Shown in pieces: positions 1-49,859 of a DNA stretch of 64,000 nucleotides. A model generated the notes under the pieces. It did not search any database, had not been told where the DNA came from, and was given only the letters and a program-made list of their open reading frames with translations. Within the stretch, counting starts at the first letter, position 1; each line of letters starts with the position of its first letter. Location of the stretch: contig OZ076413.1 of NCBI GenBank assembly GCA_964187785.1, positions 73,036,001 through 73,100,000 of the forward strand, read 5' to 3'. A program made the translations under genes and the position numbers. Origin of the DNA: Amphiscolops sp. MND2022 (Eukaryota).

Positions 1-119
1 TCCGCGTTGAGTGTTTCATGAGTGGTTAATAAATGATTGCTGGTGTCGTCAATTCGGGGTGAAGTCTATGTGACAACCGGTTTCCTGTCCGCGTTGAGTG
101 TTTCATGAGTGGTTAATAA
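1..119. repeat. Tail of 87-bp tandem satellite array (continues off the window start)
   Basis: Unit tccgcgttgagtgtttcatgagtggttaataaatgattgctggtgtcgtcaattcgggg... starts at 1 and again at 88. Confidence 0.9.
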
Positions 120-357
120 ATTTGTTGTGGAATCTAAGACAGAAAAATGCCGACAGCTGTCTCGGTTTCCACGGCACGCCTAATGTTTTAAGTATATGTT
201 AGGGATTCCACAGAATTGCGTTGACGGTGTCTCGAATTCCACAAAACTAGTGGAATTCAATCAATGTTGCACGTTTAAAGACATGTCTGTTAAATCTAAC
301 GGGTTGAACGCACAAAATTGTGTTTGTAGAAAATAGGCTTGTCAATGCACTGTAATG
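120..357. mobile_element. Right terminus of an element related to the giant CATTA-terminal transposon (second copy at 1576-1813)
   Basis: Ends in GCACTGTAATG (347-357), identical to the last 11 nt of the 21266-21285 TIR. It is preceded by GTGGAATC, GATTCCAC and GAATTCCAC half-palindromes like the subterminal repeats of the giant element. Confidence 0.55.
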
Positions 358-703
358 TTGAACGGAATTATTGGGACCTTCCCTTTATGTTATCTAGGAG
401 ACCGATTGCGTATTCCTAGGATTGCGTCAACCCTAATGCGTCATGTTTTGGTTTTCTAAAACTTCGAGGTTTGTTTCTTTTGCATTGTTCTTCAGAAAGT
501 CTATTGTAAAGACTTTCTATATTGCAGTAAATTCTATATCCTTAGCTCCTGGTGAAGATGTTTGCGATGAGCAATTGAAATTTGGTTTTAACCCTAAACG
601 AGCCGGGCGTTTTTGCAACTTTTCAAAAAAAATTAAATCATCAATATCTGCACAACTACGCACAACTACCAGAGGAACGAACTATAGCGCGTTTGAAAGG
701 CCT

Positions 704-1575
704 GGTGTCGTCAATTCGGTCTGAAGTCTATGTGACAACCGGTTTCATGTCCGCGTTGAGTGTTTCATGAGTGGTTAGTAAATGATTGCTGGTGTCGTCA
801 ATTCGGGCTGAAGTCTATGTGACAACCGGTTTTATGTCCGCGTTGATTGTTTCATGAGTGGTTAATAAATGATTGCTGGTGTCTTCAATTCGGGCTGAAG
901 TCTATGTGACAACCGGTTTCATGTCCGCGTTGAGTGAAGTCGTGTCCGCGTTGAGTGGTTAATAAATGATTGCTGGTGTCGTCAATTCGGGCTGAAGTCT
1001 ATGTGACAACCGGTTTCATGTCCGCGTTGAGTGTTTCATGAGTGGTTAATAAATGATTGCTGGTGTCGTCAATTCGGGCTGAAGTCTATGTGACAACCGG
1101 TTTCATGTCCGCGTTGAGTGTTTCATGAGTGGTTAAAAAAGGATTGCTGGTGTCGTCAATTCGTGCTGAAGTCTATGTGACAACCGATTTCATGTAAGCG
1201 TTGAGTGTTTCATGTGTGGTTAATAAATGATTGCTGGTGTCGTCAATTCGGGCTGAAGTCTATGTGACAACCCGTTTCATGTCCGCGTTGAGTGTTTCAT
1301 GAGTGGGTTAATAAATGATTGCTGGTGTCGTCAATTCGGGCTGAAGTCTATGTGACAACCGGTTTCATGTCCGCGTTGAGTGTTTCATGAGTGGTTAATA
1401 AATGATTGCTGGTGTCGTCAATTCGGGCTGAAGTCCATGTGACAACCGGTTTCATGTCCGCGTTGAGTGTTTCATGAGTGGTTAATAAATGATTGCTGGT
1501 GTCGTCAATTCGGGGTGAAGTCTATGTGACAGCCGGTTTCCTGTCCGCGTTGAGTGTTTCATGAGTGGTTAATAA
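704..1575. repeat. 87-bp tandem satellite, about 10 copies
   Basis: The tccgcgttga anchor recurs at 750, 837, 924, 1021 (irregular unit), 1108, ~1195, ~1282, 1370, 1457 and 1544. Units are near-identical and have no spacers. Confidence 0.95.
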
Positions 1576-2047
1576 ATTTGTTGTGGAATCTAAGACAGAA
1601 AAATGCCGACAGCTGTCTCGGTTTCCACGGCACGCCTAATGTTTTAAGTATATGTTAGGGATTCCACAGAATTGCGTTGACGGTGTCTCGAATTCCACAA
1701 AACTAGTGGAATTCAATCAATGTTGCACGTTTAAAGACATGTCTGTGGAATCTAACGGGTTGCACGCACAAAATTGTGTTTGTAGAAAATAGGCTTGTCA
1801 ATGCACTGTAATGCTGAACGGAATTATTGGGACCTTCCCTTTATGTTATCTAGGAGACCGATTGCGTATCCCTAGGATTGCGTCAACCCTAATGCGTCAT
1901 GTTTTGGTTTTCTAAACCTTCGAGGTTTGTTTCTTTCGCATTGTTTTTCAGAAAGTCTATTGTAAAGACTTTCTATAATGCAGTAAATTCTACATCCTCA
2001 GCTCCTGGTGAAGATGTTTGCGATGAGCAATTGAAATTTGGTTTTAA

Positions 2048-2560
2048 CCCTAAACGACCCGGGCGTTTTTGCAACTTTTCAAAAAAAATTAAATCGTCAA
2101 TATCTGCACAACTACGCACAACTACCAGAGGAACGAACTATAGCGCGTTTGAAAGGCCTGGTATTGGGCTTTCATTTTGGTCAGGTGAGTCCCTGTTGCC
2201 GCTGGCCCTTCGCGGCAGTTCCGCACTCTCTGGTAATTACAGGTTAGTTTTGGGATTTGTTGCGTAAGAACTTGATATGCAAGTGCCTGGGGTTGGTTTT
2301 TACTATGGAAAAGATTTTTTGAGAAAACTGGATTTCACCAAAAAGTGAATTTTAGAAAAAATAACAATTTGTCGTGCAAAAATCCCATTTTTCTTAATTT
2401 TGGAGATATATTCACTTTTCCTAATGCTTGTGCCATTCAAACCAATCTAGTTACCAAGGAATTGTTGGAAAAAACTGTGCTAGAGAATATGGGCTACTGG
2501 CAAAACGGATTAGAAATTGAAAAAAAATGTGACTTTAAAGTACCGTTGGGTCGTTTAGAG
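2048..2560. mobile_element. Non-autonomous piggyBac-like MITE (~513 bp); truncated left-end copy at 592-708
   Basis: TTAA|CCCTAAACGACCC (2048-2060) and GGGTCGTTTAGAG|TTGA (2548-2560) form a 12/13 inverted repeat with TTAA and degenerate TTGA flanks. Confidence 0.65.
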
Positions 2561-3212
2561 TTGAAGTCATCAAAAATTTCCTTTTTTGACTTATATATAT
2601 CCGAACGTTTTGGGATAATTTCCTGATTGCGATCAAGTTTTCGATTTTTTGTGAAGGTACATCAACATCGACATCGTGATCAATTTGACCAAGCTGGTGC
2701 ATAATAATTGTTGTTGTGACTAGTCTTTTCTATTTGCATGTTCTTTTCTATTCCAAATCTGACGGGACTGTGTTTTTAATGAACAACACCACTGTTCCAG
2801 TCTATTCTGGAACAGTAGTGCTGTTTGAGACGCATAAAAACTTCCTAAAACCTATTAACCCATTATCCCGCTTCGATTCAATTTGCAACAAAGAGCGCTT
2901 ACTAACATGTAGCGCCTCATTGCAGTCAGTTTGAAAACTTCGTCAGGTTGTAGACTTGAAAGTTTCTGTCACTTTTCTAGCAAAAATTGGTCTTTGAACA
3001 AACAATGCCTTTCGTCTGTTTTTTTTGGAAAAACTTTCATCACATTTGGTTGAAGAACTTTCTTCTTCATCCTTTTTAACTACCTTCTTTTAAAAGAGTC
3101 TTGCAGCCTGGAGCAACTTCTGCGAAATGCGGAAAAAACTGTTTTTATCAGTAGACAAGAAAATACTTTTGATATCTCGAAAATTCCTCTGGAAACCTTT
3201 GAATGAACTCAC

Positions 3213-3862
3213 CTAACTCCCGTAGTTTTGGAGTAAAAGTTGTTGTAGTGCACTTCCAAGAGGCCCAGAGTTATTGAGATTGACGTGATTGTAACCAAAG
3301 CAGCCGCTAGCACTTTATGATGACTCGACGTGAGTGAGAGAGAAGGTCGGCACACTAACAGGTATCTCACGAAAGCCGTGGCTGTCAAACAAATCCCAGT
3401 GCTGTATTCATTTAGAAAAGTTCGCAGCTCCAAAAGCACACAACCCAGTAACCCACCAACCCAGTGAAGGTTTTCAAAATCCACAAAATGAACATACGGA
3501 GGACCCATGAGATCATCTCTGGCGAAGTGTTTCTGTTTTGCATAGTATTTGTCCATAAGTTTCCACTCATAGATCCCATTCGCAACTCCAGGGCCACATA
3601 TGTCAATCAAACCTTGCATAATTACTGGAAAAAATGTCCAAGATCGAAAATCATTATGTCTTAGAAGAAACGCAAGAAGCAGCATGTTGAATGCAACAGA
3701 TTGGATACTGAAATAGGTGCACAGACCGAGTTTCAGTTTCATTATGTTTAGGAAAAACTCATCTACGCGAAGTCCGTCTTCATTTTTTATCATGTAGAAC
3801 CATTCATCCTGATAACCAAGGCTGGCAACTGGGGTTGCCGTCGAGCTGTTATTGATGCCCAT
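3213..3862 (-). CDS. First coding exon of a divergent rhodopsin-like (class A) GPCR, TM1-TM4
   Basis: Open 217-codon frame from ATG with an N-terminal NNS sequon and four hydrophobic helices. TM3 ends TAFVRYLLVC (DRY-like), with an extracellular Cys before TM3. A canonical AG|GTGAGT donor lies at 3213/3212. TM5-7 exons were not located. Confidence 0.72.
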
Positions 3863-4159
3863 GATTGCACAAGCGTGAAGGAGCTGGCAAAGAATGAACT
3901 GACCGAGTTGATCGTAACAGAATGCAGTTTAATGCACTCTCAAGACTGATGTTTTCACTTTGTAGGTTTTTGTGGAGGAGCGTTAAATGTTTAACTTTGA
4001 AGGCTTGTGGGTGCTCACAGTTTGTTGGTTCAAACCGTTCAAAGAAGTTTTCAAATGCGGGATTTTTGTCCGTACTGGGTCAACTTGCAATCCTGAAAAA
4101 AACTATAGAACCTGAGAGTCCATTACAGTGCCAAAAGTGGTTATTTTGAATTTTTCTTT

Positions 4160-4350
4160 GCAGTGAATTTCGCTGCAATGCATTGGATTCCACTATCAAA
4201 TACCTTAAACATTCGGATCTTGCAGTGGATTCCACTTAACACGAAACGTGGATTCCACTAAACGCAGCAGTGGACTCCGCCGATGGCCGCAGTGGAATCC
4301 ACCATTGGCTGTAGTGGACCCCACTGCAGTGTTTTAGTGGAATTCACTGA
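4160..4350. repeat. Left subterminal cluster of GTGGAWTCCAC palindromes
   Basis: Exact copies at 4225, 4248 and 4292, plus several variants (gtggactccgc, gtggaccccac, gtggaattcac). Confidence 0.85.
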
Positions 4351-4709
4351 ATTCTTTCAATACCAACCTACAAAAGCTATCAACCATCGAAAAGAACTGG
4401 AGTTAGTGTACTTCAGTGCCTAAAAGTGTTTCCTTCACGTGTTCAGTTTTGAGAATGAGGAACATTTTCAGAATCAGCAAGTGTCACAAAAAGCAGAATT
4501 CATGTTTTCTTCATTTGGTTCAAAATTATTACTACAGAGTTTTTGTCAATCAATTTATTTTGATACTCGCACCGCTTTGCCTCTTTAGTTTGACTTACTT
4601 TTTTCATTCTTTGATTGAATCAAACTTCCCAGCTGACTGCAACGGGTATCTTATCAATTCTACCAATCTACAAGTTCAAATTCAGTCATCTAATAAATTT
4701 TAGAGTAGC

Positions 4710-5170
4710 GTCAAATCACTGTTAGTCAATTTGTTGCATGCTGAATATGATGCTACTTCAGAATTTATTACATCAAAAGAGTGGATATCAAAATTTCACC
4801 CACAGCTTATCCGTATATTTTAGGTATAACAAGTTTTCGTTTTCCAATCACCTCATGGTGGATACCAAAATTTCAAAGTAAATTACAAGCCGAATGATGA
4901 ATGAAAATCAACTTATTGTTCTCAAATTCAAATTAAAATTTCGTCCTCTAATAGACTTTAAAGTAAAGTCATATCACTGTTAGTCAAAATGCATGATGCT
5001 ACTTCAGAATTTATTACATCAAACTAGTAGATATCAAAATTTCACAGACAGCTCTTGCGTGTACTTTAGGTATAACTAGTTTTCATTTTCCAATTATCTC
5101 AAGGTGGATACCAAAATTTCAAATTAAATTACAAGCCGGAAGATGAATGGAAATCAAATTATTGTTCTCT
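4710..5170. repeat. Diverged ~250-bp direct duplication inside the giant element
   Basis: tcactgttagtcaa...gatgctacttcagaatttattacatcaaa...ggtggataccaaaatttcaaa occurs at ~4716 and ~4974. Confidence 0.85.
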
Positions 5171-5269
5171 ATCAATATCTCTACCCCTCATCTAGATTTA
5201 TGCGAAGAAGACGTTGCAAGGATTCACTGAAATTGTTATTCACGGTGTTTTGTTCCGGTGTTACGAAAA

Positions 5270-6365
5270 CAAAAACATTTGTATCTGTAGCAATCAGTGT
5301 TTAAATACAAAATCGCAATTGAAATTAAAACGAAAGTAGTGAACAATTGAATACAAAACAACGAAAAGATAATCGTTTTGAAAACGCAGCCGAGTGTTCT
5401 GACGATTCTATCAGTCAAATATCGGCTGGGAATCTTCACGTTCCTGGAAAAGTTGATTGGCAATAGGGTCATTGCATTCAAAACGGAGCTGCTCAAATGG
5501 TAGAACATCCCGTGTATCTCGGAACACTACAATCTTATTGCCATTTTGAAACAACTATATCAATGTAGGCTTCGTGTTGGCGCCGTTTGATTTCAACTGC
5601 GAGTGGTTGGCAAGGCGTTCAGGGCAGCAAATATTTGGGTGAAGGGGGCAAATCTCTTTCGAGGCATCAATGATTCTTCTAGAAGCGCCACTTTTAACCT
5701 CCAGAACGAACTCCTGTTCCACACCTTCTTTCTCGAGGACTTGGCTCAATGACACGTTCAAATACACCTCGCCATGATTTTTCATTAAAATGTCGTCCTT
5801 TGAAACTTTCTGTGTGGCAATCACACATCTACCAAGTTTTGTCATTTTGGCGAAACCTAAACAGATTCCAGGCTACAGCTGTGTCTCACATTGTTGCGAC
5901 AACATAATTTGTGCTTCATACGGCAAATTATGGGCCAGTCCAGCATACCGAATTCCACTGCTCTCAGGTACCTGCGAGGATTTTCTAATTGACTGGTTGT
6001 TAGAGAGAATCAATAACTGCGCTGTCACTTTTTTCACGTCCTGGTTCTTATCCTCTAGCGAAGTCCAATTTTGTCGCTGGAAAAATGCCGTCACTCTTGA
6101 CTCAAGGCAGTTAGTAGCAACTTTCCCAGAAATGTGTTCAAAGTATAGCAATGTCCTGGCTTACTGGCGGGTGTACCTCTGCTGGTCTTGGCGGGCGCGA
6201 ACAGCGTTTCTCACCCCATTTTTGTCGAAACCTTTGACATTTGATAGAACCAAAGTCGTTGCATGTTTCAGCTTGGCGATTTTGAAGCAGGGGTCATTGG
6301 GAAGTGGCATCAGTTCCGCGACTTTACTTTTCAATGTATTTTGATCTTTCTTTTCTTTTTTTTTG
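5270..6365 (-). pseudogene. Disrupted cargo ORF of unknown function, downstream of and probably part of the 327-aa gene
   Basis: The KKKEKKDQNTLK... segment and ORFs 5873-6151 and 5555-5845 share one frame, separated by single stop codons. A plausible 53-nt GT-AG intron at 6366-6418 would link it to the upstream exon, but it is out of phase by 1 nt at an A9 run. Confidence 0.5.
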
Positions 6366-6392
6366 CTTGAAATGAAAAGATCGAAAACATAT

Positions 6393-7395
6393 TTAACGCA
6401 TATTTAAGTCCGTTTTACCAATTGAATTCACAAAAACTAACTCTGTATTAATTGGACGTTTGTCGTCTTTTTCGTATCGAACAATGGCTAATTTGGTGTC
6501 GTTGGGATCAAAAAATGGCCGAATTTGTGTAAAATATACTTTCAATGCTTCAACAAAATTTCCGGGTACTTTGTGAACTGTTCGTTCCGTTGATCCAATT
6601 GTGTGTTCCACACAGAGATTGAAGGCGTCGCTCAGTAAGTTTTCTTCGTGATCCATCACGATTTGCACAACTGAATGTACCGAGACATTCCTGATGGAAC
6701 TTTCAAGCATAGGTGGTACCGCAAAATAGAACAGGGTTGTAATTATGCATCGAAAGAGTTCCAACTTTGCTTTTTGTACTACTCCCACGTCTTCTTTCGA
6801 TGCCTTCACATGTTTAGTCAACGTGCTTTCGTACACGTTGTTGTCAAAGTAAGTAACTTTCGCGCATTTGGATGGGCTATCACCTAAATTATCCTCACTG
6901 CACTGGGAGTCATATGGACGCTTCTCGGGTAGCTCATTGAGCAGGGATGACACATTGTTCGGGGGCGCATTGCTTTGGGGTGGCCCGTTCTGGTGAGGCA
7001 GTAAATTCCGTGACGGAGGGGCCTGTTGCAAGAAGTTCTGAGGCGGCAAAGGAATCTGAGTCAGATTGTGAGCATTCCGCAGTAAATTTTCTAGAGGTTC
7101 GGTGGGCGTGTGTTCAATCAAGTGCTCGATCCCATCAGAGTTCATCATTCTAGTTGCACTGAACAAACCCTCCTCGTGGGCCGATGGAATTGGCGAGCAA
7201 GCTGGCTGACAATACAGGAGTGCATTATTGAGTAAATCTGGTGGCACGTTCCAGTCGGTAGATCGTTGATGCGAGTATTGCACAGGCGTAGATGTCTGAG
7301 ATGGACACAAGAGTGTCGATTCGAGATTTGAAATTTTGTCAGGCATGCTGGAATTATTCATAACTTTGGAGCACAAATCTTGACAGTGGATTTCG
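6393..7395 (-). CDS. Orphan cargo exon (~330 codons; Pro/Gln-rich middle, predicted helical C-terminus), copy A
   Basis: Stop-free for 327+ codons. It is preceded by a strong acceptor (CTAAC branch point, tttcttttcctt, CAG at 7398-7396). No domain recognised. Confidence 0.65.
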
Positions 7396-8167
7396 CTGAA
7401 GGAAAAGAAAGTTTTGTTAGTTTTTTTGAAAAAGCATCATTTTTCTAATTAGCAGAAGAGTCGATTTTACCTAATAAACTAATAACTTCAACCAGTAAAT
7501 GTTATCAGGTTTAATACGGTGATTGAGTCTTTCCAGGACTCAAATACCTCTTTGAATATATTAATACTCACTAGATAATTTAATTGCTAGTGATAATTCT
7601 TTTATTAAGCTCTCGAAAGGGAATGACACCTCCTTTTAGGTCCATCACCGTGAATTTAGCCTCATATTTTGCGCAAGTTTTGTGTTGGCACCTGGTAGTC
7701 ACTTTGCACAAATTTGAATAGTTTCTCCTCAGAGGAAATTCACGTGTTTCTTCCCGTTGAAGTCAACTTTAAACTCCACTACAATGCTTTTGCATAGTTT
7801 TAAATTATACGAAATTGTTCCAATCCTCGACCCCGAAACTTATATTTGTCGCTGGAAAAATGCCGTCACTCTTGACTCAAGGCAGTTAGTAGCAACTTTC
7901 CCAGAAATGTGTTCAAAGTATAGCAATGTCCTGGCTTACTGGCGGGTGTACCTCTGCTGGTCTTGGCGGGCGCGAACAGCGTTTCTCACCCCATTTTTGT
8001 CGAAACCTTTGACATTTGAAAGAACCAAAGTCGTTGCATGTTTCAGCTTGGCGATTTTGAAGCAGGGGTCATTGGGAAGTGGCATCAGTTCCGCGACTTT
8101 ACTTTTCAATGTATTTTGATCTTTCTTTTCTTTTTTTTTGCTTGAAATGAAAAGATCCAAAACATAT

Positions 8168-9170
8168 TTAACGCATATTTAAGTCCGTTTTACCAATTGA
8201 ATTCACAAAAACTAACTCTGTATTAATTGGACGTTTGTCGTCTTTTTCGTATCGAACAATGGCTAATTTGGTGTCGTTGGGATCAAAAAATGGCCGAATT
8301 TGTGTAAAATATACTTTCAATGCTTCAACAAAATTTCCGGGTACTTTGTGAACTGTTTGTTCCGTTGATCCAATTGTGTGTTCCACACAGAGATTGAAGG
8401 CGTCGCTCAGTAAGTTTTCTTCGTGATCCATCACGATTTGCACAACTGAATGTACCGAGACATTCCTGATGGAACTTTCAAGCATAGGTGGTACCGCAAA
8501 ATAGAACAGGGTTGTAATTATGCATCGAAAGAGTTCCAACTTTGCTTTTTGTACTACTCCCACGTCTTCTTTCGATGCCTTCACATGTTTAGTCAACGTG
8601 CTTTCGTACACGTTGTTGTCAAAGTAAGTAACTTTCGCGCATTTGGATGGGCTATCACCTAAATTATCCTCACTGCACTGGGAGTCATATGGACGCTTCT
8701 CGGGTAGCTCATTGAGCAGGGATGACACATTGTTCGGGGGCGCATTGCTTTGGGGTGGCCCGTTCTGGTGAGGCAGTAAATTCCGTGACGGAGGGGCCTG
8801 TTGCAAGAAGTTCTGAGGCGGCAAAGGAATCTGAGTCAGATTGTGAGCATTCCGCAGTAAATTTTCTAGAGGTTCGGTGGGCGTGTGTTCAATCAAGTGC
8901 TCGATCCCATCAGAGTTCATCATTCTAGTTGCACTGAACAAACCCTCCTCGTGGGCCGATGGAATTGGCGAGCAAGCTGGCTGACAATACAGGAGTGCAT
9001 TATTGAGTAAATCTGGTGGCACGTTCCAGTCGGTAGATCGTTGATGCGAGTATTGCACAGGCGTAGATGTCTGAGATGGACACAAGAGTGTCGATTCGAG
9101 ATTTGAAATTTTGTCAGGCATGCTGGAATTATTCATAACTTTGGAGCACAAATCTTGACAGTGGATTTCG
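8168..9170 (-). CDS. Orphan cargo exon, copy B
   Basis: Identical to copy A except TERTV/TEQTV; offset 1775 bp. Confidence 0.65.
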
Positions 9171-9558
9171 CTGAAGGAAAAGAAAGTTTTGTTAGTTTTT
9201 TTGAAAAAGCATCATTTTTCTAATTAGCAGAAGAGTCGATTTTACCTAATAAACTAATAACTTCAACCAGTAAATGTTATCAGGTTTAATACGGTGATTG
9301 AGTCTTTCCAGGACTCAAATACCTCTTTGAATATATTAATACTCACTAGATAATTTAATTGCTAGTGATAATTCTTTTATTAAGCGCTCGAAAGGGAATG
9401 ACACCTCCTTTTAGGTCCATCACCGTGAATTTAGCCTCATATTTTGCGCAAGTTTTGTGTTGGCACCTGGTAGTCACTTTGCACAAATTTGAATAGTTTC
9501 TCCTCAGAGGAAATTCACGTGTTTCTTCCCGTTGAAGTCAACTTTAAACTCCACTACA

Positions 9559-10769
9559 ATGCTTTTGCATAGTTTTAAATTATACGAAATTGTTCCAATC
9601 CTCGACCCCGAAACTTATATTTGGAAGTCTGCGAAGATAATAGCGTTCACAACTGATTGGTGTCTGAAAATCCCATGGATCGACTGGAGCACTCGTCTGC
9701 AGGCAATAGAAAATCCGCTAGAATTGCGTCCTGGCCGAAATAGGTGGAGCATTAGAAAAGCCCGACATTCGCAACCAGTCATGTCGAAGAAGCGTTCTAA
9801 ACCCCTGTCGTATAACCCAAACCGACTGCAAAATAACGAGCCCGTGCAATTTTGGCTACCCGAATGTGATTTTGTGGGGCATTGTTTTATTGATTCCCAT
9901 GAAAAAATTAAAACGGGATTTATTTCGACGAATGACCCAATTACCCATGAGTGTGTCGTGGAGATGGACGAAATGTTTAGATTTATCCCCTATTGTTACT
10001 TGAAGAACTCAGTGGAAAACACCCATGTCACGATGAGAAAGCAGAAGACGGCGATGAAGCTGAAGATGCGAGGCAGGAACATCGGGAAGAACCAAAACAG
10101 AAATGAACTTGAACACAAACACCGGAAATAGACTTTTCAACATTGATCCCGAAAAGCCCTGTTGATGTCAAATTAAGCTATGTACCATGTGTCAATGGGA
10201 TTTGTCAAAGAGGATCCATCATTACTTTGTCTGGAATGGAATTCAAAGCCGAAGATTTGTACTACAGTGCGCAGAAGTTGAAATCATTTGCAATAATAGT
10301 ATTCGTGGACGATGAAGACTGCGAACTTAGGATGCCGGTCAACAACGGTTCGTTGAAGATCTCGGACTATTTGAAAAACATGGAATAAAGTTTTTTCACT
10401 CTTGATAATGATGTTGATAGAACGTTTGCAGTCTTTTCGACAATCAAGAGATGTGTTGGTTTGTCGTTCAACAAATCATCAAATGTGACAAATATGATCC
10501 CTGCAACTGAGCTCACAAAACGTGTCTGTGGGTTCAAGTCGGACTCAAGCAAAGAAACCGTGAAAATTTCAAAAGAAGTTGAAACAGGAAACTTGGGAAG
10601 CTATAACAGCTTAGATTGTATATTGGGCAAGAACTGTGACATCATTCCAGATATGCTTGAAGATGAGCCTGCCACATTGATCAAGATTTTGAAATTCACG
10701 GCGCAACTTTTTGATGTTCTCAATCAGATGCCACATAACGACAACCGAAAGTTACTACAAAAAACTTGA
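9559..10769 (+). pseudogene. Disrupted ~400-codon cargo ORF, divergent from the 327-aa gene, function unknown
   Basis: ATG at 9559 is open to 10131, followed by a frameshift. 10143-10388 and 10461-10769 share one frame, separated by a single stop. Confidence 0.5.
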
Positions 10770-11179
10770 AGATCATCGACGAAGCTTTAGACAAAACAAC
10801 CAACATGCGCACATTGAATACTTTGTTGCCAATGACCAATAGGGGTAGCATTTTTGGTATCCACCGTGAGTAAGTGTGCGATTAGGTCTCCAAAAAACGT
10901 CTGTTTTGTTACCTTAAATAAACTGAATGGTATTTCTATTGGTATCGTTCAAATAAAGTTCTTTTTTCTTAAATCGATTGTTACAGTAATTTTGTCCTTG
11001 TTACAGTAATTGATGTCGAAAAAGTTTTTTTACTTGTGACTACATTCTTGAGAAAATCGCCAGTAGTTAATTTCAAATAATGCGTTTCCCACTTGCGTAA
11101 TAATGATTTATTACTTAGATTGTGACACTTTCCAAACTTTCGGTACAAACGTTTTTTTAAATATGAAACCAGAAACGGT

Positions 11180-11465
11180 AGGTGGATTTGACTAACATAT
11201 GCAAATACATTGGCAGTGGATTCCACAAACAAATCCTTAAACATTTGCAAACCATTTCAAAAGGGGTACATTCAGTGAATTATTAGTTCTAAATTGACTT
11301 AATTTTCTTTTGCAGTGGATTCCACTATTCTGGAAAATAGTCTTCATCCTGCGAAAAGTGGTTTGTGGAATCGACTAACGTATACCAATACATTGGGAGT
11401 GGATTCCACAAACAAATCTTTACACACTTGCAAACCAGTTCAAAAGGGGGTATATTCGGGGTATG
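11180..11465 (+). repeat. Internal inverted-repeat arm L (~1.5 copies of a ~184-bp monomer)
   Basis: aatacattgg(c/g)agtggattccacaaacaaat occurs at ~11205 and ~11388. The segment is the reverse complement of 15720-16045. Confidence 0.85.
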
Positions 11466-11864
11466 TTTCAGGCTACTGGAAATCAGCCATATTATCAAGA
11501 TAGTCAAGATCACGAATAAGCTTTCAATTCTAAGCTAAAGAGTTTGATCAATATAAAAACTAATAAATTATAAAAGTTTCTTCAAGTAGTTCATCATAGT
11601 GAGGTCTTCTCAAGGCTTTTTTTACAGTGGAGGCTTGTTGCGAAGGCCAGCTTGTAGAGAGCAATTTTCTTGCTCAAAAACTCTTTGAGAGTGTCGCAAC
11701 TTGCAAAGGGAGGCAGCAGTGTGTCTAAACAGATCATAATGATGCGGTTTGCAATTTTTTTCAACAGATTTAATCTTTTTCCGATAGTGTAGTGGTCAAA
11801 TACCTATGTAGAGTTTAAGATCAAGATTTCAAAAATTATGACATCACCAATTGTGGCTCCTATC

Positions 11865-14257
11865 CTATATCCTATCCTTCTCCTTTTGAAGGATGCTGCG
11901 GTCACATGTGCTGGTCTTCTGCATTGTTTCGGGGATTTCGGTCTGGTGCAATGGTCCAATTCGCACTTCCTTGATTGTCCCTGTGAAGGCGTACACTGGC
12001 CCTTTTGGGTCGCGATAGGGCTGCTCTGGATCCCTCAATCCCAGTTGATGCAAATTGAAAGCTGGATACACCTGGTAACAAAAGGCATTGACAATGATGA
12101 ATAGAGCGAATTCAAGAAGAAACGTGCAAAATTACATTTTTATTTGAAGAAACTACAATAAAATTGTTAAACGTTTCGAAACCACAACCAATAAATTCCT
12201 TACTTCAAAACCCAGTGTGTGGAAGAGATGTTTTCTTTTTTCAACATTATCAGTTCCCATTCAATATTAACAAACATTCATTACCATTTTGATGGCGTCG
12301 AGCTCACTGCCGATCTGCTCTTTGAGAAGCGTAAGTTGTTGGCTTGAGAAGAGGGGGCTCCATGATCCTCTCAGGGAATTGAGTTTCCGCTGGATTTGTC
12401 GTATTTTCAACTGTAACACAGCATAAATAAGAACAACTACAGAAAAAACTTCTTCATCATCAATTTCCTGCTGACTGGCAATGAGATGGCTGTCCACAAT
12501 CAGAGGGAGTTGGAGGCAAAAGCAATGGAGTCCCCTTTGTCGCAACTACGTGTGGCCAGCGTGCAGGCAAAACGAGGATGTCGCCTGCTTCCACCACAAG
12601 TTTGTGGACCCCACCTTTCAGCGCTTTCAGGTTCCCGAAAGAAGTTGGTCTAAATAGAGACAAATTTTTATACATATGAACGAAACAACTGGTTCAATGA
12701 TTTTGAATCAAGTGTTTGATTGATAAATTGCTCTTTTCAAAATAATGACTTTGCGTTGAGTATGTTTTAAGTACATGATTTGAGTACTTCTACCTGCAAA
12801 ACGGCACTTGTCGGTTCCACCAGCCAGAAGATATTCTGCACTCGGGCGACAGTATAAAAGGTAGTCCTGCTAGAAAAGTCGACATGCCACGGCGTGACAC
12901 ACTGGTCGTTTGAGACCAGCAAATAATTGGATGTAGCCTCAGTGAAGTGCCCTGCTACATCCACACTCATCTGCTAGGTGGTCATCCGCAGAGTATCGGA
13001 CAAAGTCTGGTACTTGGAAAAACTAAACCAAAACGATAAGACTTCAGCAAACGGTTTCGAAACAAAGGCTCCTTTGAACCTTTCCAAGGTGTGGTAAAAA
13101 ACCTTACATTCCGCTCAAGTGCAATATCAATGATATTGACAGGAAATGTCCCCGTAGGCGCTATAGAGGGCCCCGCTCGCTGCTCGTCCAGGTATTCCCT
13201 CACTGCTAAAGACCTGACCTGAAATTCAAACTGTATATTCCGATCATACTCCTTTGAAACTACTTTACCAATGTTTATATATCTCAAAGTGAAATCCACT
13301 GCCAACGATGTCTTAGTCACTGTCCAGTGGATACGAAATCTCAAAATACTTTGGTTCAACGGAGAGAATAATTTTTGTCACTAATGGTAAAACGCTATAA
13401 TTAAAAAAAGTTTGTGAAATTCGAAAAGTACAAAGAATGGCGGTATATGTTCACCTGTTGGTCAGGTGGTAGTCGTGATGTCTTTGCAGCAAGCTTCGCT
13501 GCAGGATTAGCCACGTGCTGCAGCAAGAACTCGACTTGGTGGAGAAAGTCCTCAGCGGGCAGAACTGGGAGCTTCAAACATCGCGAGTTCATTGCCCCGT
13601 TCTTCCACAGTTTTGGCTGGCCACGAGAAAGTGCTTTCATGACCATGCCGTTTTCATCTTTTTGCCCATTCTCCCACCTGCAGCAGTTCCATGACTCCTC
13701 TGAAAGCAGCATGTCATCTAGGTGCTTTACGAAGAGACTCTTCCCTTCGTACGCCCGTCGACTTGGCTCGCTCGTCATTGCCATGTCGCTTCCTTTGTGT
13801 CAGGTGTCTCTGTAGGGAGTCAGTCCGGGCAAATTCTTCACCACAGGATGTGCAAGGATTTTTCTTGCTGGGGTTGGCTGTTCCTAGGAAATTTTATGTT
13901 TAAACTTCAAACTACTCGTCGAACAGTTCTGCCAAAAACAGTATTTTCCCATCGTGAAAGCTAAACCAAGTAACACAATTGTTTTCGTTTTCTCACAGGC
14001 AAATTGTTGACATAAATGGTCTGCTTACAATAATTTCTATTATTTTGGGGTATGTCTGTCGTGCAGTACCTCGCATTCTCGATGTGCCGCTTGAGGGTTA
14101 CAGGGGTGGCAAAGACCCTCTTGCAACGGGGACAAGCTTTGTTTGGCGGCTGCTTCGAACTGCAAGTTTTTTGGTGCCTCTCAAGTTTCGTGCGGCGGTT
14201 CGACTTGTACGAACAATTGGGGCAGTTGAATTCAGTCTGTTGAAACAAGAACAACAC
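11865..14257 (-). pseudogene. Spliced zinc finger + JmjC (KDM2/KDM7/PHF8-like) histone demethylase gene, frameshifted
   Basis: Two C2H2/C2HC-type fingers (CPNC...HQKTC; CPRC...HIENARYC) at 14060-14230. JmjC motifs: NYLLVSNDQCVTPWHVDFSSRTTFYTV..IFWLVEPT (12810-12930), VVEAGDILVLPARWPHVVAT, and GDSIAFASNSL after a frameshift in a G run. GT donors at ~13456, 12793 and ~12284. A phase-0 junction reads AIKM|VYPAF. Confidence 0.8.
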
Positions 14258-14632
14258 TATAGTTTAACCTCGAAGTCTCGTGCATTTACCTATTTTTTTA
14301 GTTGTCATGTAAACTTATATATGAGTATCAAAGAGAATTGATCTTTGAGATCAGAACCATAAAGTATTGGATTGCTCCCTCTTAAAATGATATAAAAAGA
14401 TCGAATTCGGGTCTTTTCTGTTATCCCCCACCCTACTCATTAAAATTTTACCCCCAATATTTCGTATGTCAGGATAAAAAGAGCAGTACATGACTCACTT
14501 CCTAATGATTCACTTCTTAATGAACATTTCAATTTTTATATGGTAAGAATCGTAGTAAAAGACTAATTTCCTTTGACTCATTTCTTAACGAATTGAGGGG
14601 GAAGAGTAAACATGCTGGGGGCTCTTTATTTC

Positions 14633-14960
14633 TACTCACGGTGGAAACGAAAAATTGCCTCTACAAATGGTGAACAATTTTTCACTCAGGCCTGTTCAAA
14701 GAAGATGGCAGTTCAAACTCAGATTTGTTTTTCTACTCGGGGGAAACGAAACTTTCCCTATGGAAGTTCAAGAGGACTTTTTACTGACAGTGTGTACCAA
14801 ATTTTTACTATACAGACTCAGGTTTTTTCCACTACTTACGGTGGATACAAAAAATTTCTATTCAAATGCAGAACAAAACTTTACTCACGGTGTAAACCAA
14901 AAAACTTTTATTACAACTGAAACTGACTCCTTTTCTGCTCACGGTGGATACACAAAGTTT
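14633..14960. repeat. Degenerate ~50-bp tandem array (~7 units) with core TACTCACGGTGGATAC
   Basis: Core variants at 14633, ~14683, 14733, 14782, 14833, 14882 and 14936, upstream of the ZnF-JmjC gene. Confidence 0.75.
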
Positions 14961-15719
14961 TTCAACTGAAACGAACATTTTCATTTCGTATCCCCAATTT
15001 TAGAGGTAAAACTATAAAAAAAGGAACTAACCATTATGAAATGAGGAAGCAGGCAACGTATAAGGAAATCGACTTTAAAGACTTGTATGACAAAGGTCAG
15101 GCAAAGACCTAAAGAAGGCTTTTTGAATTAAGTTGGTCAAAACTAGCAAGCGGTTGAATTGAAAGATCGAATGACAAAGAATCAATTCCCTGAACTAGAA
15201 AAACATTTCCTACATCCACTTCGGCAGTCAATCAAAATCGAATTATCATTTCCGGTTCCGTAAACTTTTGTAACAGTTCTGTTTTATGACGCTACAACTG
15301 CAAACACGTTTATCAAATTGACACTTTCTTCAGATTCATTCCAATTGTGCTGAGTGAATGCATACATTTGAACAAATGAATGGTAAACAAAATGAAACAT
15401 ATTTAAGCAAAATGAAAAACGGAACGAGAGCAGACTTTTTCTAGAACACAAAATGATTCACTTTTTAACCTACCAAAAAAATTTTGAATGCACTTTAGAT
15501 AATTGAACGTTGCATATGTCTTACGAAAACCTATTTTATTTGACAACTTCTCTGAAGTCACAAATATTTAGGACAAACGTTATCAAAAATTTCTGTTATT
15601 GGAACCCTATGTTGAATTTGATCATTAAATTTGTTCATGATTTCTTCCGTCGTGACTCTGAGTGCGGTAATTTTAATTTTAATTATTGTAGCCTGATGTC
15701 ATTCTTTTTGTTGTACATA

Positions 15720-16045
15720 CCCTCTTTGAATAGGTTTGCAAATGTTCAAGCATTTGTTTGTGGAATTCACTGTCAATGTATTGGTATACGTTAGTCGATT
15801 CCACATATCACTTTTCGCAGGGTGAAGAATACTTTCCAGAATAGTGGAATCCACCGCAAAAAAAATTTAAATCTATTTAGAACTGTAACTCACTGAATAT
15901 ACCCCTTTGGATTATTTTGCTAATGTTTAAGCATTTGATTGTGGAATCCACTGTCAATGTATTTGTATATGTTATTCAATTCCACTAACTGCTTTTTGCA
16001 GGATAAGGAACGTTTTCCAAAAGAGTGGAATTCACTGCAATAAAG
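15720..16045 (-). repeat. Internal inverted-repeat arm R (~1.8 copies of the ~184-bp monomer)
   Basis: Reverse complement matches arm L, e.g. gtggaatcgactaacgtataccaatacattg and gtggattccactattctggaaa. Confidence 0.85.
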
Positions 16046-16387
16046 TTCAAAACTATTCAGGATTTACAATTATTACAAAACTGGTGTTTTTTTACTCCTG
16101 TAACTATCCCACTTGCTGGAACACTACGTGGTTTCAGCGCGCTCCGGACTTCATTTTTCAAACTTCTTTATATACCACCCCAAAGGTGAAAATGACCGCC
16201 AAAGTTTAGACAGTTGCTATAAAAGTCGAAGAATTGCTACTTTTTTGAGAATTACTTTTTTGGTAATCAATAAATGAGTTTCTTCTAAATAACCAGAAAA
16301 AAAATGTTCAAAAGCTTATTTATTACCACAAGCAAAGATAAAAGAATATGTCTTCAAAATCAAGTAATGAACAAGCAGTTGCAAAAA

Positions 16388-19300
16388 TTAGAGTAAAAGA
16401 CGATCATCAGCTGGAGTTTTGTTAGGTTTCACTAGGCCGTTTCGGTATCTTTTCAATGCCAAAATGGCAGACGAATTCTCTATTGATTTGTTATCATCTA
16501 TTTGAACCATTAAGAGTGGTCGCATGTCATTAATTTTCATCCGGTTGATCAAGAGTCCAGGCCCTATCATATCTTTATTAGGGTCTAGAATGAAGGTAGA
16601 TTTCATATTTCGAGTACGTATTCAACAGTGATGAACATGAAACCCCCGACGCAAATAATTTGCAGCCCAAAGCTGCTGGAGACAACTTCTTTTGTTTAAA
16701 ACTTTTCATTTTCTCTGCTTTCAGCGTCTGTTGACAACTCACTCGCGGAACAATGTCTATGAAGCTTCAGTTTTGTTCTCATGGCTTCCAATTGATATTT
16801 ATCACCGGTCGCATTATTAAGGTTCTCTTCATCTTTGACAATAACGTGAAAATTCAAGATATTTGAATGGGATTTCATTAGGTTCTTTGCGTTTTCTTTC
16901 TCATAAACGACACCTCCCATTTCGGAAATTCTATCTTTGAGGAAATCCTGTGTGAGCCCACGCTTGAACCTACCTACAATTGTAAATCTCGATCCTCTTA
17001 GAAGGTCGCAAAATTCTCTCGTTTCGCCAACGGCAAGGCAGGGTACCGCCAGGAGACCTCTACAAATGTCTAGATAAGTTTTGGCACCCTCGAGAGTCTC
17101 TTCAGTCGTGAGTGTTTTTCTCACATGTTCAATGAGATTGGATATATTTTTCGGAAATTGTTTAAGAAATATCCAGGAACCAGCAAAATGAAAACGCAGT
17201 ATCCAGAAATAATGGATCTTGATGGTAAATGGAGCCACCGCCTCTCATGGTTCAGGTTCGACTTTTTCTGTTGGCATTGTGGTTTGATTTTTCCAAGCCT
17301 TCGCAGAGGTGATTCCTTGACCTCTCAATGTACCCGCTTTCAACTAGTTGTGCCATCAATGGAAGCTTGAGTTTGTATGGTGTCGACCCCTTTTGGCCGA
17401 AGAGAAACAAATTGATTCGAAAGTATGTTCCAGCCCATCGTTTGTAAGTGTCGACATCAATGTTTTCTGACTTCTCAACAGAATAACACACTGGTTTAAA
17501 CGTTGTCGTAGAAGCTCACAAGCGTCAAAAGTTGACATATATCTTTCTTCGTTTCTTAGATTTATGGGGTCTCGTTTGTCAAATAAATGTGGATGTAAAG
17601 ACTCCAGTACTTTTGCAGCCTCCAAGTTGTATCCATTCTCACTTCCAAGAAGTATCTCTGTCGTCCAAAAACCGTCATAAAGGTTCTTGATTGTTTCAAG
17701 TTGAGCATTTCTAAGTTCTTCTGTTTCAGCTATAACTGTGAGTGCATTCGACCCCGCTAATGACTGTGGTCCTAATGTTCCTGGGGTTTTACCTACGTTC
17801 TTGTGGGTAATATTGAACTGAAAAGACAGTCTTTTAGCTTCTCGGCTGGTCAGATTTTTTTTCAAAGCGCTGAACGCTTAAAGCTTCCCAGGGATGTTTG
17901 TCGTTAATTACCTTCTGAGCCACTCTTCTAATATCATTCTCACTGCAACGCGTTATCATGTGTGACAATACATCTCTAGGAACATGTTGTCTGAATGGGA
18001 TCTACAAAAATGTTCATCGTCCATCGACATCTGAGCAGCAGGTGGGGAGGAAATTTTTATCGCATACATATATCGGAAGTTGTGAGGGATGAGAACTTGA
18101 ACGTTCAGTTGAAATTCCAATGACCCAACGCTTCAAGAACGGGCTGTCACCGCTGTATGTTATTTCAAAGCCCAACGATTGTAATTCTTTTGTCTGGCGG
18201 TATAGCCATCTAGATTCTTGCTTACCCAGGATAGACGGTCTAAAATTTTGTTCCATTGCATATCGACCATCTTTGCCACGATAGGATGCAAAACAGAGGA
18301 CAGCTTTTGATGATTAGCTGCCAACTGTGGTGTTCAAAATGCTGAATGCTAGACGCGTTACCTCAACCCCCCCCCCATTTCACAACCGTCACCCCAAATA
18401 TAATTTTTAAGGCCTTCAAGATTGGTTTTTTGCAGGAAAATTAATGACGCAAACGTCACTGCTTTCAGTAAATTGACTAGAAATCCAGAAGAGGATCGTT
18501 CAGGCTCGCATCTTGTAACAAACAATTTCATTATGAGGCTAGTGGCTCTTTTGATGTGACGAATTAACGTTACTAGGCTACTGCCTCCTAAGCCAACCGA
18601 AACTACCCGTTGCCGAATTGCATTGAGGATATCTTCCATGTTGCCAGTTTTCATTTTGATTGAAAGTTCGTACCTAAAGCACTCGGAGGAGCTTCTGTCC
18701 TCCAAAAGACCCGTGAACAAGTCTCGAATGTGATTACTGCTTGCGCTCCTTTTCCGCCACGCGCTACGTTTCTGATGCTGTTCTTTGAGAATTGTAGCTA
18801 ATCCTTGATTAGGTATACCATGCATTCTAGCAAAATTCAGGACTTTTGTCCAAAAAATTTTACTATTAGTTCTGTGTCACTTTTTGAGTTGCAACTGCGT
18901 AATATTCATATCTGCTTTTTGCTGGTCTTGTTGAATATCAACTTCTGGTGTCTTCTGTAGCACTGCATCTTCTTGGAATGTTACTTCAAGCGGTGTTTTT
19001 TCAAAAGTCCCATGTTGAGAAGAAAATTTATCATTCGTAAAAATACCGACGTCGGGAAAAAAATTGGTGGTAAATTATTTTGCAACGAATTCTCTTCTCT
19101 TTTCGTACCAAGGTAAGTTTTTATAGCCCCGCAGAATTAAAAGTTTCATTTTTTTCGATGTAACAAAAACATATCCCTGGGAATGCCCTTTGATTGGTAA
19201 TTTCTGAATAAGATCGTCTGTCTTCAGAGTGGTCCCTACGACCATTTCAGCAACGATTGAAGTAAGTTTCCGTTGACAATTTTTTAACGTGTGTCCTGAC

Positions 19301-19650
19301 ATAAAGTCTACAATTTTGGAATCGATAAATTCTTTCCCATCATCTAGTGATAGACTGAACATTTCAAATTCTGACATTTCTAAACTTGTAGACAATGAAA
19401 TTGAGCGTATCAATGGTGTATCATTCCGTTGACAATGATTACGCCGAAAAACTATCAATATACGTTCAATTGTTATTGAGTTTCCCGCTCGTTGCGTCTT
19501 CTGATACTTCTGAATTTGGGCCTCAACTTCAACCTCAATTAAACTAATCTTGCAACATTTTTCTCATGGTATTACTGCTCCGCACGCTGTTTAATTAATT
19601 CTTCAACACCTGTTTTAAAACATTTGATTGCACGTTGAACTAAAAATACA
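16388..19650 (-). pseudogene. Disrupted ~1000+ codon RAG1/Transib/Chapaev-like DDE transposase with C-terminal BRCT-like domain
   Basis: A chain of minus-strand ORF pieces contains HVPRDVLSHMITRCSE (D-x-L-H-like, ~17930-17990) and STPYKLKL...NHLCEGLEKSNH (17290-17385). The latter resembles RAG1 TNYFHKTLAH...SEGNES with its catalytic Glu. LRGSRFTIVGRFKRGLTQDFLKDRISEMGGVV resembles a BRCT N-terminus. Confidence 0.62.
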
Positions 19651-20869
19651 TTGTTATGCGTGCGTTCACTAGTAGGTGATAAAGTTAGGTGTGATTTACC
19701 CCAAAAATCATGTGGAATGATTTTTCAGTGATTTTTTCAGTTAGATTTTTTGTGTCCACCGTGAGTCGGTCGACATTATATGAATGATTTGAGTGTGATT
19801 TTACCCCAAAAATCATGTGGAATACTGCCAGCAAATTCTTCTGTTGTTTTTCGACCGTGAGTTGACCGTGAACTGGAACAAAGTTCAAGCACTACTAAGT
19901 TGCTTTACCTGCTGCTGTGTGTACTCAAGTTGACAAAAAAAATAAATGACGAAGAAATTTTTTTAATTATTGAAACTACACATTATCATGAGCAAAAGAA
20001 AGACGTGAACAAAACTTACAACTAAGTTTTTATAGGGTGTAGAAGAGAGGAACGCATCAGGTGTAAGTTGCAATCATTGATAAAGAGTGATTGTAAATTT
20101 CCCACAAGTCGCCAATTGCGTCACAGAAGTTGTATTCGGCATCCTCAAACAAACAAATTTAAAAAGTGGAACTTTTTCCTTTTTCTCACACTTATCAAGA
20201 TGTTGTTTTTGCGATTACAGTAGACTTCGGATAATCGATTACCGGCGTATCCAAAATTTCAGGTAAACGAATTAAAATCCCCGGCAGAGTAGAACATACT
20301 AACATGTTTTCGTTCAATGAATATTTTGCTGAAACAAATATTTTTCGCCGGTCCTGCCAGTATTCTATTAGCCGAAGTCGACGGTAAGTAACAACAAAAA
20401 GACTTGAAAACACACCAGAATCCTTCAATTTTAAATGTATTTCCAGGGGAACAAATTACAATTGAGATACAAACTTTGTTCACACTCTTTTCCCTACTCT
20501 TTGAAAGGTGTGGGGGACTAAGCAAGAAGAGCCAAAAGTCTTTCAATAACGTGGTTATTCACGTGTTAGTTTGAGAGATACATTAATCTGAACCAACATG
20601 AAAATTTTGAAAGAAGAATTTCCACATTTCATTAATGTTTCAATCTTGTTTCTCAATGAAAAATTGGAAAAAAGAAATTTTGAAAATTCCTTCATGTTTC
20701 ATTGATGTGTTCTTTGAACGTGTTCTTTTATGTGTTCATTTGTGAGATACATTCAAATTAATCAGCTTTCACATAATCAACACAATTTCACAGGATTTGA
20801 GCGTTCAAAACTAGTTTATCATGGATTAAGTGTTACATGATTTGAGTGGATTACGAACTTTTCTTACCC

Positions 20870-21240
20870 GCGCGTGGATTTGAGTGGATTACCGCATTGT
20901 GGTCAATTACCTTACAGTCAATTCCACTCGTTTTGCAGTCAATTCCACAAGTTGAAAAGTGGAATCGACTGCGAGCCAAATTGTAATTGGCTGCGAGCCA
21001 AAGTGGACACGACTGTAAGCCGAAGTGGAATCCACTGTACAATTCAGGGATTTTCGCTGAAAGTTGAAATAAGCTGACGCGATTCGTTCAATTCAGTTGG
21101 CAGTGAAAAGCAGTGTATTTCGGTGATCGCATTTCTGTAATTTAGCAAGATATGTTACTGGAATCCAGAACAGGCTGCAGCAGAATCCACTGAAAATCAG
21201 TGAAATACATGTTTAATAATACGTCAGTGGATTTCAGTGA
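20870..21240. repeat. Right subterminal cluster of GTGGAWTCCAC-type repeats
   Basis: Exact GTGGAATCCAC at 21025, plus gtggaatcgac, aattccac, gaatccac and gtggatttc variants. Confidence 0.8.
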
Positions 21241-21399
21241 CTTAATAGCACAAAAGTGTGCTAACCCACTTTTGGCACTGTAATGTCAATGGTACATCTC
21301 TATGACCATTGCTGCATACCATTTCGAAAGTTGCAAATTTACTTGAAACTCTCGGAACTCAATTTTTGGTGACACAATTATGATGGACGAAAAGCACAG

Positions 21400-30134: not shown

Positions 30135-30390
30135 TCGGGAATTGAAAAGATTGAATTGACATGTAAACCATTCCGGTCCTGATCTGACAATAATCTTGGC
30201 GTGGAAGGTTTTTTCGTCAAATTAGCATGCTGTGTTGTGAAATAATGACATTATCAAGTTCATCTAGCTGAATGTCTTCATTATACCATACATTATACCG
30301 TTACGGTTTTTGCTACAGCTGGTGAATGACTTCAATTTGATGATTCGACATTTGCTGAAAATCCTTCTCATTCAAATTTTTTCCGCTGAA
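30135..30390 (-). mobile_element. LINE ORF2 fragment (pre-RT linker)
   Basis: WYNEDIQLDELDNVI and SGPEWFTCQFNLF; paralogous to 40956-41190. Confidence 0.7.
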
Positions 30391-49820: not shown

Positions 49821-49859
49821 CTGATCTAGACTTAGTCTTTTTTTCTTCGTTCTATATTG

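Follow-up and report, generated by a model that had tools for sequence, protein, structure and literature searches.

The stretch analysed here, 64,000 nt of contig OZ076413.1 of Amphiscolops sp. MND2022 (hereafter the window), contains a 17,165-bp cut-and-paste DNA transposon at 4121-21285, and inside this element lies a spliced minus-strand gene whose product is predicted to join three zinc fingers to a JmjC domain of the KDM7/PHF8/KDM2 type (the ZnF-JmjC gene). We are highly confident that the gene is transposon-borne and was once functional. With a SET-domain gene and a gene for a Tudor-like protein beside it, the element seems to be equipped with chromatin-editing functions of its own, and the reading that we favour overall, while giving it only an even chance, is that of a conserved demethylase cargo opposing silencing of the element.

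A first-pass annotation, made from the sequence alone, had placed a spliced minus-strand gene at 11865-14257. This was borne out: these ends match those of the coding sequence, and six exons with AG/GT borders yield a product of about 548 aa.

14257-11865, minus: ZnF-JmjC gene, six exons with canonical AG/GT borders; the coordinates are exactly those of the coding sequence
14257-14029, minus: exon 1, start codon and zinc fingers 1 and 2 (zf-C2H2 match; first codon 14257-14255)
13883-13455, minus: exon 2, third zinc finger and a linker region of about 110 aa that leads to the JmjC domain
13218-13108, minus: exon 3, 37 codons at the beginning of the JmjC fold region, with homologous segments in the related copies L008 and L009
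13022-12794, minus: exon 4, JmjC core with HxD (WHVDF), from phmmer against PDB
12649-12285, minus: exon 5, second JmjC half with WPH (second Fe ligand) and a helical region; a relative's exon matches ceKDM7A
12071-11865, minus: exon 6, C-terminal tail, including the ELM2-like VRIGPLHQTEIPE, and stop (TAG, 11867-11865)

Related copies were collected by a HMMER scan with the 127-aa linker open reading frame (ORF), followed by exact look-ups on long contigs of assembly ERZ25074608. The scan gave five matches at E ≤ 1e-3, namely three ORF fragments, of which two are close copies and one is a distant relative, and two weak matches to repeat-rich proteins, and no annotated full-length spliced relative was among them. 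The borders of exon 3 are canonical AG/GT in all seven full-length copies aligned, window copy included. Two other features of the gene model were considered and dropped: a 39-nt mini-intron at 12449-12411 was ruled out, as this stretch keeps the frame and corresponds to coding sequence in L008, and an upstream coding exon is unneeded, since other copies have ATG where the window has GTG.

Exon 1 matches Pfam zf-C2H2 above the cut-off (32.2 bits vs 25.2), with fingers 1 and 2 reading C-x2-C-x12-H-x4-C and C-x2-C-x12-H-x6-C, and a further finger, C-x2-C-x12-H-x6-H, opens exon 2. The first-pass order of fingers followed by a JmjC domain therefore holds, although its count of two fingers has to be raised to three. 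Finger 3 and the linker share one open frame in P0002, P0003 and all ENA copies, and finger 3 occupies the same exon as the JmjC linker, which speaks against the case, named in the first pass as a refutation, of a finger exon not spliced to the JmjC exons. The JmjC domain scores 15-21.5 bits with Pfam in the split exons of the window copy and its relatives, short of the cut-off of 24 as a result of its division among several exons; the HMMER check suggested in the first pass thus succeeded for zf-C2H2 and stayed sub-threshold for JmjC, for which phmmer against PDB was used instead. Window exon 4 retrieved KDM2A (E = 9.5e-5) and PHF8 (6e-4), as well as KDM7 and PHF2, while better-preserved relatives matched PHF8 (1.2e-11), KDM7 (1.6e-10), PHF2 (1.3e-9) and KDM2A (1.1e-6), and the exon for the second JmjC half of one relative matched C. 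elegans KDM7 (ceKDM7A; 1.2e-7) and PHF8 (1.3e-5). Both Fe(II) ligands that the first pass had read as WHVD...WPH are present in the window copy, forming a complete HxD...H (WHVDF...WPH) that lines up with HID and H in PHF8 and ceKDM7. At the level of sequence, the presumed position of the 2-oxoglutarate-binding Lys reads GQK or GEK in relatives, GEK in PHF8 and VQN in the window copy.

These comparisons show a predicted product of KDM7/PHF8/KDM2 type with a complete HxD...H iron site and three C2H2/C2HC fingers. The KDM2/KDM7/PHF8 pattern recognised in the first pass is upheld by the PDB matches, with C2H2-type fingers in place of the PHD or CXXC reader; upstream of the JmjC domain no PHD or CXXC module was matched by Pfam, and only fingers of C2H2 type were seen. 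The element protein resembles KDM7/PHF8/PHF2 and KDM2 in giving its best sequence matches to them with both JmjC halves, in its HxD...H and, among relatives, in the Lys of GEK/GQK. Unlike the members of the KDM2/KDM7 clade, it has three fingers and an ELM2-like tail, no PHD, CXXC, F-box or LRR, and is the product, about 548 aa long, of a multi-copy, transposon-encoded gene. The tail matches Pfam ELM2 below the cut-off of 21.7 bits (17.4 in the window, 19.6 in L008) and over the first ~20 profile positions only, but the motif G-x2-[HY]-Q-[AT]-x-IPE is shared by the C-termini of JmjC proteins from two divergent lineages (window 11925-11965; L008:18706-18927, minus). It is a short conserved motif and not a full ELM2 domain; full ELM2 domains recruit HDAC1/2.

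The boundaries of the element follow from three kinds of evidence, exact terminal inverted repeats (TIRs), a flanking target site duplication (TSD) and the points at which homology to other copies ends.

4121-4140, plus: TIR CATTACAGTGCCAAAAGTGG, 3' end of the element in gene orientation; exact match, and homology to all copies stops here
21266-21285, minus: TIR, 5' end of the element in gene orientation; exact match, with a sharp homology boundary in five of the six copies first fetched
4119-4120, no strand: TSD TC, low-coordinate side; TC directly flanks both ends
21286-21287, no strand: TSD TC, high-coordinate side; same dinucleotide as at 4119-4120

The terminal 20-mer has exactly two matches in the window, vs 0.01 expected by chance, and the 17,165-bp element so delimited ends in CATTACAG...CTGTAATG, i.e., 5'-CA...TG-3'. 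Six other loci are collinear with the window from about 21286 down to about 4150; on the transposase side homology ends at the identical point in five of six loci, at the far end in all three with a readable flank, and beyond these points unrelated flanks abut CATTACAGTGCCAAAAGTGG and its reverse complement. A 2-bp TSD accompanies all five insertions of which both flanks are readable (TC in the window, CA in L001, CT in L005, TA in L006, TT in the L008-type element). Taken together, homology ends, exact inverted 20-mers and flanking duplication place the element at 4121-21285. The first pass was thus correct in regarding the gene as transposon-borne, the transposon being this 17.2-kb TIR element, but the inverted repeats adjacent to the gene, at 11182-11453 and 15717-16046, were ruled out as its ends: they are internal arrays, homology runs through them to 4121 and 21285, and the terminal 20-mer is absent from them. 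The L008-type element, 18.9 kb long, has perfect 26-nt TIRs visibly homologous to those of the window, its perfect inverted repeat reaching three bases (GGC) beyond the homologous CATTAC....

Whether the gene stays with the element was examined across copies and lineages. The ZnF-JmjC gene occupies the same position in 9/9 family copies fetched, that of the window and L001-L006 included, and L011, which was fetched via its transposase alone, has it at the usual place; the first-pass proposal that the gene lies inside this TIR family is true of every family copy fetched. Three divergent lineages were likewise fetched via the transposase (L008/L010, 34% transposase identity; L009, 47%; L007, 50%). 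In two of them, L008/L010 and L009, the ZnF-JmjC gene is present, its exons in the same order, together with the SET and orf408 genes described below; the part of L007 that was fetched has SET and Tudor-like genes but lacks JmjC. A fourth lineage is represented by P0003, a short contig of another dataset. Fe ligands are kept in three lineages (WHVDF...WPH in the window, WHIDF...WIH in L008, WHQDY...FLH in L009). Within the window's family, identity is 0.88-0.90 in exons vs 0.76-0.80 in introns; the fractions of variable sites at the three codon positions are 0.20/0.185/0.27 vs 0.35 in introns, third positions being the most variable (p = 0.0015), and dN/dS between the window copy and other copies is 0.28-0.31. 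Because the gene is present in divergent lineages and shows both this exon/intron contrast and this dN/dS, it was kept by selection while the element diversified. These patterns show that the predicted ZnF-JmjC gene evolved under purifying selection and that its present copies have decayed since.

This evidence bears on three other accounts of the locus. An immobile 17-kb unit, arisen by segmental duplication of a cluster of host genes or as a domesticated locus in many copies, would agree with its large size, its several chromatin genes and the 85-99% identity of its copies; we regard it as very improbable in view of the exact inverted 20-mers, the flanks and 2-bp duplications that differ from site to site, the 77- and 76-member clusters spread over many contigs, an encoded protein with a RAG1/Transib-like DDE fold and a divergent family with homologous TIRs. 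The idea of a single-copy host KDM2/7 gene or pseudogene lying between two unrelated repeats might be suggested by the window alone, where no second copy of the JmjC gene was found within 64 kb, but it is refuted by nine or more additional copies, which lie on various contigs and in each case inside the same element, and we give it practically no weight; the first pass had named a single-copy host KDM as the finding that would overturn its proposal, and the gene proved to be multi-copy and inside the element. Passive capture of a host gene (Pack-type cargo), decaying along with the element and having no function in it, has more to recommend it, since DNA transposons do capture host genes and each of the nine copies in the window's family is damaged in at least one place. 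We nevertheless consider it improbable, because lineages whose transposases are only 34-47% identical share this gene, its exon order and its Fe ligands, dN/dS is about 0.3, exons are clearly better conserved than introns, and every exon is open in the L008-type copy.

The decay of the window copy itself was scored against eight related copies. Its start codon is GTG where all related copies have ATG, the codon at the junction of exons 1 and 2 reads T|GA (stop), and a 14-nt deletion after finger 3 in exon 2 (13800/13799) shifts the frame. Exon 4 has lost 2 nt at 12967/12966 and 35 nt at its end (about 12795), and exon 5 has lost 1 nt just past WPH (12533/12532) and 19 nt at 12504/12503; VQN in place of GQK is a decay change as well. 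The frameshift reported in the first pass is thus one of several deletions of this kind, beside the lost ATG and the junction stop, and the window JmjC copy, like the rest of the window element copy, is dead. The best-kept family copies, L004b and L011, have one stop and one splice-site change, near-intact copies keep the catalytic residues that the first pass had wanted checked, and in the L008-type copy, where every exon is open, enumeration of splice sites gives many frame-compatible GT/AG pairs. Some copies show rearrangements of their own. In L004:5600-11400 the 5' half of the ZnF-JmjC gene is tandemly duplicated (exons 1-4 twice). Intron 3 of the ENA copies holds an insertion of about 100 nt, absent in the window, with the TIR-like TTTACAGTGCCAAAAGTCAG (L001:10738-10757, L002:10775-10794, L004:6992-7011 and 9908-9927, L005:10727-10746), which might represent a solo end of the element or a miniature relative. 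A further insertion, resembling a tRNA-derived SINE (GATTCGAACCCACGATC...) and likewise absent in the window, precedes JmjC exon 1 at L001:~9000-9080 and at the equivalent place in L002.

The predicted eraser, which the first pass had proposed for the element, does not stand alone: the element also has transposase, SET and Tudor-like genes, present in the window as remnants.

16427-19377, minus: transposase gene remnant, broken into several frames (tblastn of P0013 and P0016)
7304-5414, minus: SET-domain gene remnant (tblastn of the 626-aa ORF of L005, 75-82% identity)
6070-9623, no strand: tandem duplication of two ~1.78-kb units, 99.8% identical (self-BLAST, 6070-7848 vs 7845-9623)
9559-10764, plus: remnant of an ORF of ~408 aa (orf408), broken (tblastn, 80-83% identity in three frames)

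The transposase ORF spans 764 aa in L001 and reaches 834 aa among the other copies of the family, the gene encoding at least 830 aa when open; its cluster at 90% identity has 77 members on many contigs, and there are many sub-families without names or Pfam domains. At the level of sequence, profile searches of Pfam and PDB returned nothing meaningful, a weak PDB match to a repeat protein (9k9w) being taken as spurious. An AlphaFold2 model (pLDDT 58, with a confident core) was therefore compared with PDB by Foldseek, and the best 49 matches are all RAG1, Transib or RAG-like, with RAG1, HzTransib and BbRAGL on top; E-values of the top matches range from 4e-6 to 1e-3 and TM from 0.3 to 0.5, which is similarity at fold level only. 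Conserved acidic residues D326/D330 and D410 map onto a beta1-3/alpha/beta4 order that we take to be RNase-H-like. The conserved C480-x-D482-x2-H485 and H702...E705/E708...H712 differ in spacing from the published C(2)C/H(3-4)H. Elements of the CMCT clade (CACTA/Mirage/Chapaev/Transib) have CA..TG termini and a 2-5 bp TSD (PMC12730594), and the window element is like them in its 5'-CA...TG-3' ends and 2-bp TSD. Ends, TSD and the modelled RAG1/Transib-like fold of the transposase together fit the CMCT clade, and we make the superfamily assignment tentatively. A weak BRCT match was seen at the transposase C-terminus (window 16427-17238; about residues 666-730 of P0025), with 18.6 bits in Pfam, below the cut-off, and E = 0.25 to the PARP1 BRCT; a BRCT on a DDE transposase would be unusual, if real.

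The SET protein is about 626 aa long in intact copies. The L005 ORF matches the full Pfam SET profile (35.3 bits vs a cut-off of 22.4), has GRLANHS and FDY, and finds its nearest solved structures in 4ldg (1.6e-7) and KMT5A/SETD8 (3e-4), so that the domain appears, weakly, to be closest to KMT5A. The tandem duplication repeats the 5' part of this gene, a second SET match lying at 9079-7846. L003 and L006 likewise show a duplicated alignment over the region of window 6070-9623, and the 1.78-kb duplication may be older than these insertions, or recurrent. For orf408, the cluster of which has 76 members, an AlphaFold2 model searched with Foldseek matched the AGDP3 Agenet, the SETDB1 triple Tudor, 53BP1, ADCP1 and FMRP (E 1e-4 to 1e-2), which makes its product a probable tandem Tudor/Agenet protein, predicted to be a methyl-lysine reader. 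Both structural assignments, that of the transposase and that of orf408, rest on medium-confidence models.

Outside its genes the element contains a short palindrome, GTGGAWTCCAC, in a regular layout.

11182-11453, no strand: internal inverted-repeat arm A, ~182-nt tandem units with GTGGATTCCAC; motifs at 11216, 11315 and 11399
15717-16046, no strand: internal inverted-repeat arm B, same motif, at 15844 and 15941
4185-4302, no strand: subterminal GTGGAWTCCAC cluster; exact motifs at 4225, 4248 and 4292, degenerate copy at 4185
21025-21035, no strand: subterminal GTGGAATCCAC motif near the end on the side of the transposase; 2-3 motifs occupy this place in the ENA copies

The window holds nine exact copies of GTGGAWTCCAC vs 0.03 expected, all nine inside the element. 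They form four clusters, one beside each TIR and one on each side of the JmjC gene, which recur in other family copies. Arm A, downstream of the gene, is 86.5% complementary to 15985-15717, and arm B lies upstream of the gene; both arms are internal to the element and found in every family copy. In other lineages GTGGAWTCCAC is absent, and the L008-type element has a dispersed motif of its own, TTTCTAAACCGTGAGCA. The layout is as expected for candidate binding sites of an element-encoded protein.

The surroundings of the element were surveyed as well. Window positions 1-2162 are taken up by a tandem array resembling a satellite, which has a period of about 87 nt and copies 92-98% identical; just past it, about 260 bp from the transposon end, lies a rhodopsin-type GPCR ORF (3209-3862, minus), and BEL/Pao retroelements are nearby; within the analysis, the host was taken to be apparently an animal on the strength of this GPCR and these retroelements. 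Reverse-transcriptase fragments at 26265-29363 and 38849-41185 (Pfam RVT_1, 58.9 bits) occur in a 1.3-kb tandem duplicate (98.8% identical), with a relative of 77-80% identity 11 kb away, indicating nested retroelement debris. Strong strand asymmetry extends over long stretches, with an AT skew of +0.2 to +0.3 at 30-38 kb (30000-38000) and a GC skew of +0.15 to +0.43 at 44-56 kb (44000-56000). At another locus, upstream of the transposon copy (L011:5237-7668), ORFs matching Pfam Monjiviricetes_fusion (glycoprotein-like fold) adjoin LTR-retroelement pol genes and may represent an env-like gene or a piece of an endogenous virus.

What the ZnF-JmjC protein did for the element can be proposed from these features. 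In an active element, the protein would be brought to element chromatin by its fingers or by other element proteins, the candidate address being the family-specific palindrome GTGGAWTCCAC. There it would erase repressive methyl marks on lysines, such as those on which KDM7/PHF8 enzymes act (H3K9me2/H3K27me2/H4K20me1), and loss of the mark would allow continued transcription of the element and access for transposition. Self-targeted anti-silencing by the predicted ZnF-JmjC enzyme may reasonably be inferred; that a histone demethylase acts on the element's own chromatin to oppose silencing is a serious possibility, which we stop just short of calling probable. More speculative, and in our view rather doubtful in its full form, is an animal transposon module in which a zinc finger-guided JmjC eraser, a SET writer and a Tudor-like reader would be addressed to family-specific palindrome arrays, with a specificity that co-diversifies between sub-families.

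Several observations weigh against a demethylase that opposes silencing. The JmjC domain never reaches Pfam's own threshold, the joining of the exons is inferred from conserved splice sites and homology, none of the nine copies examined in the window's family has a fully intact gene, and all related copies come from ERZ25074608, except one short Logan contig. A PHD finger aims KDM7/PHF8, and the element's JmjC protein is without one. GTGGAWTCCAC could equally be a putative site of the transposase or of another element protein. Finally, KMT5A writes H4K20me1 and PHF8 erases it, and the co-carried SET domain, weakly closest to KMT5A, is a misfit with a pure eraser model; with a KMT5A-like writer beside a PHF8-like eraser, a simple account in which an eraser keeps the element active would be incomplete. 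This last point favours an alternative in which the JmjC/SET/Tudor-like module serves transposition or self-regulation and not escape from silencing. Such a module might mark or read chromatin in the choice of donor or target site, coordinate excision repair or limit copy number, and JmjC could even act on a non-histone protein, e.g., by hydroxylating or demethylating the transposase. Eraser, writer and probable reader do travel together and are conserved across lineages, a KMT5A-like SET and a PHF8-type eraser working on the same mark would suggest a regulated cycle and not one-way erasure, and a BRCT-like transposase C-terminus would point to a link with repair, although that match is weak. 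On the other hand, the nearest solved enzymes are all histone lysine demethylases, and the motif clusters lie beside genes as well as beside the ends, a layout no less suited to transcriptional control. We hold a transposition or self-regulation module to be possible but on balance unlikely, and retain as our preferred reading the conserved demethylase cargo that opposes silencing.

Parallels to this arrangement exist among plant, fungal and oomycete transposons. In Spm, TnpA binds to the subterminal repeats and helps silenced elements to become active again. Like En/Spm (CACTA), the window element is a large TIR element with subterminal clusters of short repeats and more than one encoded protein; unlike En/Spm, its accessory genes encode predicted chromatin enzymes and not a TnpA homologue, and its transposase has no Pfam match. 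The VANC proteins of Arabidopsis VANDAL (MuDR) transposons are anti-silencing proteins (PMC5735166), and here the likeness consists in a TIR DNA transposon with its own accessory protein and with family-specific short motifs in non-coding parts that differ between sub-families. There is, however, no sequence relationship, and VANC is not of a known enzyme class and acts on DNA methylation, whereas a histone-demethylase fold is predicted here. TET/JBP dioxygenases are carried by fungal KDZ/Plavaka/EnSpm-like elements, and SET genes by HarbingerS/MuDR elements of oomycetes (PMC12730594). The former share with the window element a stable cargo that is an Fe(II)/2-oxoglutarate dioxygenase removing a methyl mark (predicted in our case), and the latter share its SET gene. 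It differs from the TET/JBP elements in that the predicted enzyme is a JmjC lysine demethylase directed at a histone or protein mark and not a DNA mark, in a host that is apparently an animal, and from these enzyme-carrying transposons generally in uniting eraser, writer and probable reader within a single element. Neither a transposon-borne JmjC histone demethylase nor an element with eraser, writer and reader was found in the open-access full-text literature searched, which is not proof of novelty.

The element indicates that a transposase lineage with a RAG1/Transib fold can sustain elements of 17-19 kb with four conserved genes. It also offers a testable system, with near-intact natural copies, a defined 11-mer as the candidate address and sister families with another motif as specificity controls. 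Transposons known to counter silencing include those with VANC and TnpA in plants, fungal elements with TET/JBP and oomycete elements with SET genes. Should the module described here work on the chromatin of the element itself, it would be the first case of a DNA transposon that counters silencing by enzymes at the level of histones in an apparent animal genome.

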